Shown here: positions 5,863 to 18,387 of the stretch, one piece after another
Numbering within the stretch: the first letter of the stretch is position 1
Layout of the letters: the number at the start of each line of letters is the position of its first letter
Assembly (NCBI GenBank): GCA_002269645.1
Contig: NIVC01001149.1
Location: forward strand, 124,001-188,000
Length of the DNA: 64,000 bases
From: Macrostomum lignano
Taxonomy: Eukaryota
Reading direction: 5' to 3'
Position numbers and translations under genes: made by a program
Notes under the pieces: model-generated
Seen by the model: the letters and a program-made list of their open reading frames with translations, nothing else
Databases searched by the model: none
Told to the model about the DNA's origin: nothing

Positions 5863-8800
5863 ATGGCACAGCGACGGCGAACAAAGACTTTTCGGGACAA
5901 AAAAGTAAGTAAAATATATTTATAGGCTCAAGCCGTGCAATTGCAGTTGCAGGAACTCACTCGTTTGTTTGAATGAGCAGCTTGGGTGCCTCAATTGCAG
6001 TTGCAGCAACTCACTCAGCCGGACCCCAGACACCGGGCAAGCGTCGGAGACTCACCAGCCGATCTCCAGAATCTCGCTCACGACGTCATCCGAGGTGACT
6101 TCGGACAGGTGCGGCGGCTGGCAACGCGCCAGGTGGTCACCAGCGCTGATGCAGCTCGTCGAACCGTCCTCATGCTGGTGGCCGACGCTCCTGAGACTCC
6201 CGTGCACACTGAAAAGTGCATCTTGTACTTAATTGAACTGAGCGCGAACCCCAAGGCGGCTGACGCGAACGGCGACACGGCTGCGCACCTAGCAGCCCGG
6301 CGGGACCACCTGCGGCTGCTGACGCTGCTGTCGTTCGATGCGAAGTGGCTGCGGAACGACAACGGCGCCACTCCGCTGATGGAGGCGGCGCGGACTGGAA
6401 GCTGGAAATGCGCCAAGCACCTGCTGCACCTGCTCAGGCAGGACGGGTTCAACGAGTATGAGAATCATGGAAACTCGAAAAGGTCGCGGCTGCTCGGACT
6501 GAAGAATCGCGACGGTCAGACAGCGTCGGACCTGGCGAGGCGCAGCGGCTACCCAGAGCTGGCCAGCTACATCGAGCGGTGAGTGAGCAGTTCGCTTCTG
6601 TGTCCATCAAGTTTTGCAGCATTCAGCTGGGGTGGCCAGAGCTGCAGTCTCAGGCCAGCCAATCAGAGCCAGTCAGCTGAGCTTGTCTTCCTCTAGCTTG
6701 GTTGCGTTGAGCTGGGGTGCGGGTTGATCTCAGTCGAGAATGGAAGCTGTAGGGCCTTGGTGTGCAGTGAGAATGTGTGGGATGAGCTTCAGATCGAAAA
6801 CTGGGAGGCTGTGCGTGAGTGCTTTGTGTGATATTGTCTGATGTAAAGAAACCAAGGCTGCAGAAATGGAAAATGAGCTGCGTGTGAGAAGTTGAATTCG
6901 CGCTGTCGTCAATTCAGACTGTTGCAGAGCTGCTGTAGTCCTCTTGTAAACTCCAACTGGAAGCAGCTCAGATAATTTAAAATAATTCGAAAAAATTTGG
7001 AACTAAAATTTGAGAAAAATTATGCCTGGAATAAATCTCTTGTTCCGTTTTGTTTCAGGTTTCGTTTCGTTTCTTGTTTCGTTTCAGGGAGATGCGGCTG
7101 GTTGTGCATGTACTTGGCTGGATCTCCGGCCTGACAGCCCAGGTGAGCGGCATCTGCGGTGCCGATGTGGCTGCATGCAGCTGAGCAGCTGTGCTCAAAT
7201 TTCTCGCTCGCCTTTGCAGGAGGAGGCGGATCGACAGGAACTGCAGCGGCTGGCTGAGGCGGGGGACTCGACGTGGCTGCGGCGAGCGGCGACCCGCGGC
7301 AGCTGCGACCTGCCTGACAGTTCGGGTCGCACCGCGTTGATGTCAGCAGCTCAGAACAGCTCCTGCATTGATGAGGCTCTGTGGGAGCAGCTAGTGCAGC
7401 TGAGTAACACGACCTGTGCAGATAGATGGGCTGGTAGTTGCTTGCATTATGCAGCCAGGGCTGGCAATTCTGCCGCAGCCTCCGCTCTGCTAGCGGCCGG
7501 AGCCTCTGCCAATGCCAGGAGTCGGTGGGAATTCACGCCTCTCATGTGGGCAGCCATCGATGCGCCCCCCATCACTGCCGCCTCGGTCGCTCTGGTTCTG
7601 CTGGACTCAGGGGCGGATTGGAGCCTGAAGAACAGAGACGGCAGGACTGCGCTGGATTTGGCCACACAGAGGGAAAACAGCGAACTGGCTGAGTTGCTGC
7701 GTAGGTGAGTTTCCATGGCGACTGAGAATTTCTCTTTGACTTTGATTTATCATTGATAAACATTATGCTTTAATTTATGAAAATAATATTGAGCAGCTGA
7801 CTGCAGTTGCTCTGAGTGGGCATTTTTACATTTTTGTAGTTTAAATGGGCAGTAGGGACTGACTGAGCTGCATTGAGGGAATTTGTAGTGCAGTTTGACT
7901 GCAGATTGCCAGTTGAGACGCCAGCAAGCATTTTGCAGTGACAAGTGTCCCAAGTTTATATGGCTAATTTTTTATAATAGAAAAATAATATTTTAATATA
8001 CCGGGATGTAACATTACTCGTATTATAGCAATAATCTAAAACTTATAAAATATTGTAGCGAGCCAAGAGGATTACTGTTTGTTGTGTCACTTTAGTCAGT
8101 AGTTTGAGCTGCCGTATGCCTTTGCTATTGTGTTTGCAGCCGCTGTGCAGCTTGGCCAAGCCTGCTCTTGGTTCGCTCTCTGTGTAGCGGTCCCTAGTGT
8201 CTTTGTTAGCATTGTGATGAACTTTTATTTAGTTAACAAACTCTACATGTATTTACAAGCCGTCAACGGCTGAGCCGCAAATTTCTATGAACATTTCGTA
8301 TACAGTACGAGTTATGCTCACTAACTAAAAGAGCCACAAAACATAATGCAAAGAACACTAAGTTTCTGTTGAGATGAGCTTGAGCTTGAGTTGGGATGAT
8401 GTTGAGGCTGCTACTCAAAATAACTAAAGGACTGAAAATAATATATAGAAAATATATGAAAATAATAGACTAAAATAACTGCCCAAAGTGCAGTGAATAC
8501 CTCACTGCACAATGAGTCTGTGTTTATGGCGGAAATCACGCGCTCCTGGAAGGCAAGCCCTTGCGTCAGTTGCTAAAAACAGCAACAGCATCACACGATC
8601 TTGCGCAATGGGGCCTTGCGTTCGATGGAGCGATTGTTTTCAGCCTATAAGTACAAACTCTCTCCAGTCTTGTTTCTGTCAATGAGTTAGTTAGTCAGTT
8701 AGTTAAGTTACTTAGTTAGTTAGTTAGTTAGTTAGTTAGTTAGTTAGTTAGTTAGTTAGTTAGTTTGTTTGTTTGTTTGTTTGTTAGTTAGTTAGTTAGT

Positions 8801-17800: not shown

Positions 17801-18387
17801 ATGTTCCCATGAATGATGACTGCTTACTAACCGATCTCTCGCAGATCTGCCGCGCGCTGCTCTACCTGCACAGCGGGCAGCCGCCCGTGATCCACAGAGA
17901 CATCAACTGCTCGAACATAATTGTTTGTGCTGACAACACGCGAATCAAGCTGATTGACTTCGGTTTGTCAATCAAGCTGGAGCTGTCAATCAGCCACATC
18001 TCAGCCTCCTCTCAATCGCTACCCAAAGGCACTCTAAACTTCATGGCGCCAGAGCTGCTCGGAGCGGGAGAGTCGGACAGCGTGCAGTACAGCAGAGAGT
18101 CGGACATCTGGGCGTTCGGCTGCTCGGTCTTCCAGATGGCCTCCGGCGCGAGGCCGTTCGCGAACGCCAAAAGCCTGTTAGAAATGGCTCAGCTGATCGA
18201 CAGGAGGGGCGCCCCCGCCCTGCCAGACGGCCGGTCCGCAGAGCTTCAGGATTTCTACAGCAGCTGCACCACTAAAGACTACCGGAAGAGAAGCTCAGCA
18301 CAGGAGCTGCTGGAGCACGAGTTCCTGACGGGAGGGAAGCGTATGCGGAAGGATTTTCCCTTTGCACTTTTTGGCGATAGAAAATAA
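14884..18387 (+). pseudogene. Ankyrin-repeat + STE/MAP3K-like kinase, copy 2 (tandem paralog; predicted frameshift at first kinase exon, possibly functional if this is an assembly error)
   Basis: Exons 14884-14958, 15731-16299, 16488-16542, 16616-17100, 17293-17325, 17412-17767, 17845-18387 are homologous to copy 1. The first kinase exon is 356 nt versus 364 nt in copy 1, which breaks phase and gives TGA at 17491-17493. All kinase motifs are otherwise intact (GRGAFGEV, HRDINCSN, DFG, APE). Confidence 0.7.

Follow-up and report, generated by a model that had tools for sequence, protein, structure and literature searches.

An expanded ankyrin-kinase family of Macrostomum lignano with position-specific hypervariability in its second ankyrin module

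Introduction

Does a pair of neighbouring ankyrin-kinase genes in the flatworm Macrostomum lignano carry a binding surface kept diverse by selection, or does its divergence reflect the mixed ages of its exons? The two genes, here called copy A and copy B, lie on the same strand about 4 kb apart and are the only copies of their kind in a stretch of 64,000 nucleotides (hereafter the window), which is identical to contig NIVC01001149.1 of assembly GCA_002269645.1 from position 124001. Flatworms are models of regeneration and parasitology, and their intracellular sensing machinery is poorly known. A preliminary description of the locus read the pair as fast ankyrin evolution beside a constrained kinase, with the variable sites on the ankyrin binding groove. 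As presented below, the second part of this reading holds across the family to which the pair belongs, and the first does not follow from the pair itself.

Gene structure and domains of copy A

Copy A (5863-11681) consists of seven GT-AG exons, with splice sites read directly from the sequence, and its translation equals the annotated 690-amino-acid protein BOX15_Mlig013011g1 (P0002). The encoded order is a first ankyrin module (ANK1), a linker, a second ankyrin module (ANK2), a second linker and an STE-like kinase, distributed over the exons as follows.

5863..5904, + strand: exon 1, with the ATG, MAQRRRTKTFRDKK; donor GTAAGT; matches the N-terminus of P0002
6001..6578, + strand: exon 2, N-terminal helices and ANK1 module; binding-surface positions nearly invariant across the family
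7088..7142, + strand: exon 3, mini exon 1 of 55 nucleotides, EMRLVVHVLGWISGLTAQ; predicted beta-hairpin linker between the ankyrin modules, with a variable tip
7220..7704, + strand: exon 4, ANK2 module of four repeats with the hypervariable groove
10025..10066, + strand: exon 5, mini exon 2 of 42 nucleotides, YDGKIYFEEPLAL; kept in six other paralogs
10734..11097, + strand: exon 6, kinase N-lobe, with GRGGFGEV and CAAK
11175..11681, + strand: exon 7, kinase C-lobe, with HRDINCSN, DFG and MAPE; stop codon

The preliminary description was right to see a tandem ankyrin-kinase gene here and wrong to give it four or five exons, since the two mini exons had been missed. Pfam analysis of the spliced gene (a 676-amino-acid model) finds Ank_2 (3.1e-34) within residues 86-385 and Pkinase (1e-46) at 399-668, and copy A has the generic architecture of an ankyrin-repeat protein kinase, with both domains in one polypeptide. 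This order is the reverse of that in RIPK4 and ANKK1, where the kinase comes first, and the distinction drawn earlier from those proteins is borne out. The N-terminus of copy A, MAQRRRTK, is not a signal peptide, by which the proteins of the family are predicted to be cytoplasmic.

An AlphaFold2 prediction, run with a 24-sequence family alignment, gives residues 35-395 a predicted local distance difference test score (pLDDT) mostly above 90 and shows two helical-repeat modules joined by the hairpin of mini exon 1. The best-matching folds in the PDB for the predicted ankyrin region are rigid DARPin-DARPin fusions and tankyrase ARC1-3. It should be noted that mini exon 1 (7088-7142 in A, 16488-16542 in B) forms an extra variable loop outside the ankyrin repeats: four to five residues at the hairpin tip differ in nearly every paralog (for example VHVLGW, VDVGGR, VDADGE and VVGKYGT).

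Divergence between copies A and B

Comparison of the two halves of the locus by blastn yields three colinear blocks, namely the ANK1 exon (89.9% nucleotide identity between A and B), a mini exon with a short intron and the ANK2 exon (79.7%), and both kinase exons with the 77-nucleotide intron between them (94.6%). At the protein level the earlier hand counts are reproduced closely: ANK2 has 113 identical residues out of 161 (70.2%, 48 differences, where about 49 of 162 had been given), and the reported kinase identity of about 94% corresponds to 111 of 118 residues in kinase exon 1 (94.1%) and to about 93% over the core of kinase exon 2, or 89.3% with its tail. The loop differences singled out before (DSSGRT/NDWGQT, DRWAGS/DILAEN, RSRWEF/RERAEF and NRDGRT/DCYGMT) are likewise present, and ANK1 shows 84.7% amino acid identity.

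The silent divergence changes how these numbers are to be read. Synonymous divergence (dS) is 0.65 in ANK2, 0.16 in ANK1, 0.078 in kinase exon 1 and 0.175 in kinase exon 2, with ratios of nonsynonymous to synonymous divergence (dN/dS, or omega) of 0.28, 0.50, 0.37 and 0.41, respectively, and the silent divergence of ANK2 is 4-8 times that of the kinase exons (dS differences p = 5e-9 to 3e-6). Immediately 5' of the ANK2 exon, the 77-nucleotide intron is 93% identical, and the kinase intron, at 93.5%, is conserved as much as the exons that flank it. Since dS in ANK2 is high in step with its amino acid divergence, and the introns are conserved, the A/B contrast reads mainly as a difference in age, produced by a mosaic history in which B carries an old ANK2 exon lineage; the ANK2 of B is 81% identical in amino acids to those of P0008 and P0010, against 70% to that of A. 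Fast ankyrin evolution beside a constrained kinase is hence not what this pair records, and the per-domain dN/dS check proposed in the preliminary description gives, for A and B alone, values at or below 1, the outcome which it had itself set down as contradicting its claim.

Gene conversion of the kinase from A to B was considered and rejected as a specific explanation, the kinase of B being no nearer to A than to other paralogs (dS 0.06-0.12 to all); the homogeneity of the kinase is therefore a property of the family.

Variability of the ANK2 groove across the family

Six further M. lignano loci were fetched, giving ten genomic copies per exon with A and B included. The 24 binding positions were taken from the DARPin consensus (33, 2, 3, 5, 13 and 14 in each of the four ANK2 repeats) and were fixed before variability was examined. 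In every comparison ANK2 has diverged most of all exons (69-81% amino acid identity vs 83-94%), with a median pairwise dN/dS of 1.17, against 0.87 for ANK1, 0.48 for kinase exon 1 and 0.42 for kinase exon 2. Within ANK2 the proportion of nonsynonymous differences (pN) is 0.41 at the binding positions and 0.10 in the framework, the corresponding synonymous proportion (pS) over the exon is 0.12-0.14, and binding positions make up 17 of the 24 most variable columns (Mann-Whitney p = 3.5e-9). The equivalent positions of ANK1 are nearly invariant (entropy 0.42 vs 1.73 in ANK2).

The same picture emerges from individual pairs. Among five disjoint pairs, three have a replacement divergence at the binding sites 3.7-11.4 times the silent divergence of the framework (p = 3e-5 to 1.5e-9). 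The closest pair has a single silent difference in 119 framework codons that encode the same residue, against 34 residue replacements, and two thirds of its groove codons are replaced, many of them by two or three nucleotides. In a GY94-type codon partition model on a neighbour-joining tree, run with either a shared or a class-specific silent rate, omega at the binding sites reaches 4.9 when silent branch lengths are shared (7.0 without B; likelihood ratio test 121-149).

At the family level, then, variability concentrates on the canonical ANK2 binding positions, as the preliminary description had proposed for the groove, a pattern in favour of a variable recognition surface borne by interchangeable effectors. 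On these sequence comparisons the position-specific hypervariability is robust, uniform neutral divergence cannot account for it, and positive selection at the ANK2 groove is likely, though unproven. Its formal standing turns on what is assumed about the silent rate, omega at these sites being 4.9-7.0 under one assumption and 1.0-1.5 under the other, a point taken up in the Discussion.

Copy B

The exons of copy B (15731-18387) match those of A with the following peculiarities.

15731..16299, + strand: ANK1 exon, 84.7% amino acid identity to A; no homologous ATG exon
16488..16542, + strand: mini exon 1, EMRLAVDVGGRISGLTAQ
16616..17100, + strand: ANK2 exon of an old, divergent lineage; dS to every other genomic copy 0.43-0.65
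17293..17325, + strand: mini exon 2, 33 nucleotides instead of 42; LKDETFFDEP
17412..17767, + strand: kinase exon 1, acceptor AG at 17410-17411; 8 nucleotides shorter than in every other paralog
17845..18387, + strand: kinase exon 2, open reading frame (ORF) intact; C-terminal tail differs

Similarity to A begins only at 15698, so that no homologous start exon exists. Under canonical GT-AG splicing the frame is shifted before the kinase and meets a stop about 30 codons on, and the ankyrin and kinase domains are not joined in frame. Seven other genomic paralogs agree in how this intron ends and have an acceptor that keeps the frame, and six of the seven also carry the 42-nucleotide mini exon 2; the 33-nucleotide mini exon, an unrelated intron and the 8-nucleotide shortening of the kinase exon are unique to B. 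The intron of B equivalent to the 3-kb intron of A measures only about 300 nucleotides. Ways of restoring the frame were tried and rejected: of other splice sites, only the AG at 17410-17411 is available (giving the frameshift) and other GT sites include a stop; and skipping mini exon 2 leaves the same phase problem. A start exon was sought as well, and its only candidate, with ATG at 15474 and donor at 15500, ends in phase 2 and does not fit the acceptors at 15731 and 15737, which are in phase 0, leaving at most a possible remnant.

By its sequence, copy B is probably defective. The preliminary description's two paralogs with ankyrins and a C-terminal kinase are confirmed as far as the presence of the exons in both copies, and B as an intact gene is not. 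Its kinase reading frame is otherwise intact, with dN below dS, which suggests that the loss of function is recent, that the product is ankyrin-only, or that the assembly is wrong. That B is not a pseudogene at all, owing to an assembly error, an ankyrin-only protein or an alternative exon cassette spliced with its neighbours, we consider rather unlikely. Such a reading would accommodate the ORFs kept in all exons of B and the dN well below dS on its kinase branch, and annotated ankyrin-only proteins of 377-436 amino acids do exist in the family. It is also consistent with annotated transcripts elsewhere: P0004 and P0011 share their ANK2 and kinase exons but use different ANK1 exons from a single tandem array (locus L002, 10470-17300, where the ANK1 of one copy is joined to the ANK2 and kinase of the next), and P0016 extends 40 kb across another whole copy (locus L005, 11788-50151). 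These three transcripts are, however, either cassette-like exon sharing or chimeric assemblies, and chimeras may arise as assembly artefacts among near-identical paralogs. Long-read indel errors would moreover not typically produce an 8-nucleotide deletion, a non-homologous intron found in B only and a shortened mini exon, no in-frame alternative splice site was found, the public annotation of the contig calls no gene at copy B, and no database protein more than 83% identical to it was found.

Family size, effector domains and kinase class

Database searches recovered well over 100 predicted M. lignano proteins of this family. The ankyrin module is present in 55 M. lignano proteins, either alone or together with a kinase, a caspase or both, and further dozens of entries are kinase-only or ankyrin-only fragments. 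The ANK1 module was found only in M. lignano and on four short contigs, and the searches returned no one-to-one ortholog from any other species. Outside M. lignano the closest kinases reach 34-37% identity (Paramecium, a songbird PAK3-like protein and a MAP3K4-like protein); the ortholog of a known conserved gene, which the preliminary description had named as contrary evidence, did not appear.

Concerning the effector domains, P0031 carries a full caspase domain (Peptidase_C14 in Pfam) behind its ankyrin module, Peptidase_C14 is also present in P0028 and P0043, which like P0031 are sister proteins of copy A, and the ANK1 of copy A is 83% identical to that of P0031 and 81-83% identical to those of P0028 and P0031 taken together; Pfam finds no Peptidase_C14 in copy A. 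A further arrangement is seen at the gene of P0001 (locus L004, 20116-23647), where the kinase exon pair is tandemly triplicated with a period of 1306 bp and the annotated protein, of 985 amino acids, has two kinase domains in a tandem-kinase arrangement.

The kinase of copy A scores 159.9 bits with Pkinase and 117.2 bits with PK_Tyr_Ser-Thr. Its closest solved relatives are MAP3K2 (106 bits, E = 2.5e-29, about 30% identity) and ASK1 (98 bits), with TNIK and PAK, PAK1 among them (both STE20), WNK and PLK within 10-20 bits of the top matches; the 60 best solved relatives listed are mostly of the STE group, with WNK and PLK3 also present. The best named database matches, PAK3-like and MAP3K4-like, are 32-37% identical. 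An N-terminal ankyrin region with a C-terminal STE-like Ser/Thr kinase, as first proposed, agrees with these scores, which do not separate STE11 from STE20; of the label 'MAP3K-like' the STE-like part stands, and the MAP3K assignment is a nearest-neighbour label only.

Of the usual catalytic motifs, the glycine-rich loop, the VAIK lysine, DFG and APE are retained, and the exception is the catalytic loop, HRDINCSN (YRDINCSN at locus L003), where asparagine stands in place of the lysine in all ten genomic copies; the alignment to MAP3K2 sets hrdincsn against hrdikgan, and the loop departs from the canonical HRDxKxxN. The kinase part of the structure prediction has a pLDDT below 50, too low to judge the effect of this replacement.

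Comparison with known systems

Integrin-linked kinase (ILK), TNNI3K and the plant ankyrin-Raf-like kinases share with copy A the order of ankyrins first and kinase last. They are conserved single-copy genes of the TKL type, whereas the M. lignano family is a lineage-specific expansion whose kinase is non-TKL by scores, and the earlier separation from ILK and TNNI3K is supported both by the higher Pkinase score and by the absence of ILK, TNNI3K and Raf from the 60 best solved relatives listed. STE11/MAP3K kinases (MEKK2, ASK1) and STE20 kinases (PAK, TNIK) are the best sequence relatives of the kinase domain, but orthology is lacking, and their loop is HRDIKGAN where copy A has HRDINCSN. DARPins are the best structural match of the ankyrin region, and the positions randomised in their libraries (2, 3, 5, 13, 14 and 33) are those that vary naturally in ANK2; unlike copy A, they are engineered, have one module and lack an effector domain.

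The closest precedent among flatworms is a 2024 paper which treats 'ANK caspases' as exclusive to parasitic flatworms but for a single annelid caspase, lists for M. lignano only a caspase with a kinase-like pro-domain, sister to them, and reports that the flatworm lineage has lost FADD and DED-caspase signalling and that flatworms lack the extrinsic-apoptosis adaptors. ANK caspases have the same N-terminal two-module ankyrin region as copy A (ANK1 81-83% identical), and copy A differs in having a protein kinase as effector. Judged from the proteins recovered here, ANK caspases also occur in the free-living M. lignano, contrary to the parasitic-only scope of that paper, and the kinase-bearing family, its expansion and its variable groove lie beyond its account.

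A further parallel comes from fungal NLR/STAND proteins whose ANK, TPR or WD repeats are hypervariable (Dyrka et al. 2014, PMC4986451): their variability lies on the concave ankyrin surface (inner helices and hairpin), one type of sensor is combined with various effectors, kinases included, and the repeats evolve in concert. In the fungi, however, variability is found between near-identical repeats of one gene, and in M. lignano between paralogs, where the effector is C-terminal. Neither NACHT nor NB-ARC was detected in copy A or in seven relatives (Pfam, E <= 1e-4).

Genomic surroundings

Just upstream of copy A, two retroelement ORFs without public annotation (290-3688, + strand) encode 295 amino acids, with a zinc knuckle and a protease-like part, and then 804 amino acids with reverse transcriptase, RNase H and integrase. 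Directly downstream of B, a GC-rich block (20374-23576, + strand; 65-69% GC vs about 45% in its surroundings) contains another retroelement, with Gag-like (234 amino acids) and Pol (849 amino acids) ORFs, so that the kinase pair is bracketed by two retroelements. Simple repeats occur in the 3-kb intron of A, as (AGTT)x120 and a 15/28/43-nucleotide array (8685-9166 and 10078-10693), and between A and B, as a 31-nucleotide array of 14 units and a 12/60-nucleotide array (12776-13217 and 13701-13935).

Farther along the window, reading of the sequence suggests exons resembling a class-C (metabotropic-glutamate-like) G-protein-coupled receptor at 27846-28511 and 42767-44320 (+ strand), namely a fragment of the ligand-binding domain and a 517-amino-acid seven-transmembrane exon. 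On the minus strand, at 47477-48049, 48729-49829 and 53850-55025, one exon resembles a fibrinogen-related domain and adjoins two tandem, near-identical copies of a secreted protein in which no domain is obvious. In other invertebrates, proteins of the fibrinogen-related type are lectins of the immune system. An Rfam scan of the whole window gave zero matches.

Discussion

Starting from the observed architecture, family expansion, position-specific hypervariability, mosaic history and defect of copy B, the explanation to which we give an even chance is that of a modular family serving recognition, with selection maintaining the diversity of the ANK2 groove. Copy A would be an intact, and copy B a degenerate and chimeric, member of a large, Macrostomum-restricted family of cytoplasmic proteins, each with two ankyrin modules linked by a short hairpin. 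ANK1, with its conserved surface, may bind a common partner or fold back on the effector, while ANK2, whose contact positions mostly differ between paralogs, may bind diverse ligands. The C-terminal effector would be exchangeable, copy A having an STE-like Ser/Thr kinase in the place where sister genes have a caspase, and in the present case ligand binding would control the kinase. Tandem duplication and mosaic gene conversion would keep the framework, the introns and the kinase exons nearly identical, and what produces and maintains the diversity of the ANK2 contacts would most likely be selection for different binding specificities.

Several observations weigh against this explanation, some of which also favour a neutral mosaic family, in which an unconstrained ANK2 groove drifts at the mutation rate, conversion homogenises the rest and copies such as B decay, the silent divergence of the framework underestimating the age so that neither selection for diversity nor a recognition function is needed. 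A class-specific silent rate fits the codon data better than a shared one (lnL -2566 vs -2585, multiplier 5.5) and brings the omega of the binding class down to 1.0-1.5, which does not differ from 1. Counting within that class by Nei-Gojobori or parsimony likewise gives a value of about 1, in agreement with the class-specific model, although we judge these counts unreliable, as 60% of the differing codons differ at two or three positions and path averaging makes 'synonymous' steps. Both disjoint pairs that include A or B show a ratio of only 1.3-1.4, not significant. Silent differences are 2-2.5 times more frequent at binding codons; the excess lies mostly at two conserved residues adjoining variable patches, and in all four exons silent differences cluster beside replacements, which points to patchwise exchange between paralogs. 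Recombination among paralogs in turn violates the single-tree model, and the exon-specific dS and conserved introns are themselves signs of conversion or mosaicism. Copy B is frame-shifted and unannotated, an essential enzyme would be expected to show a lower omega than the 0.4-0.5 of the kinase, the replaced lysine of the catalytic loop makes the predicted kinase activity uncertain and may mean an atypical or weak enzyme, family entries are often fragments, some of which may be pseudogenes, and a literature search by six family gene identifiers returned no paper. What a neutral history explains poorly is the fine grain of the pattern. Codons that vary and codons that do not alternate at intervals of 1-7 codons, a spacing that speaks against conversion by tracts alone, as tracts cannot homogenise the stretches of 3-21 nucleotides in between and leave the variable codons untouched; the closest pair has about 1% silent difference in its framework and yet most of its groove replaced; the equivalent ANK1 positions are conserved, so that such positions are not free by default; and the median omega of the whole ANK2 exon exceeds 1. 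On balance we regard the neutral history as somewhat unlikely.

If the diversity is selected, its driver need not be a pathogen. Conflict in reproduction (such as sperm or seminal interactions in this sexually selected hermaphrodite) or within the genome, control of the abundant retroelements, or direction of the kinase or caspase to different endogenous substrates would each suit cytoplasmic proteins. Macrostomum reproductive genes evolve rapidly, retroelement ORFs lie on both sides of the A/B pair, and substrate targeting by ankyrin repeats is established in enzymes, with tankyrase ARCs among the closest folds. That the same module also sits on caspases is somewhat easier to reconcile with death or defence signalling than with housekeeping targeting, and a non-pathogen driver strikes us as quite unlikely. 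Returning to selection for recognition, an immune or allorecognition role is possible; the fuller proposal, an intracellular repertoire free of NLRs in which an ankyrin sensor on a kinase or caspase, diversified by duplication, conversion and possibly exon sharing, serves as an immune or allorecognition set, is advanced tentatively and must be rated unlikely.

RNA interference and transgenesis exist in M. lignano, and one hypervariable ankyrin sensor placed on a kinase or a caspase would offer a concrete candidate set that is testable in this animal. The family would also place the published 'ANK caspases' within a broader modular system and, if the fuller proposal is true, would represent the sensors for immunity or allorecognition in a flatworm lineage that is reported to be without FADD and DED-caspase signalling. 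If the variability is neutral, the family would still be a clear case of mosaic concerted evolution in which domain-by-domain comparisons of identity mislead.

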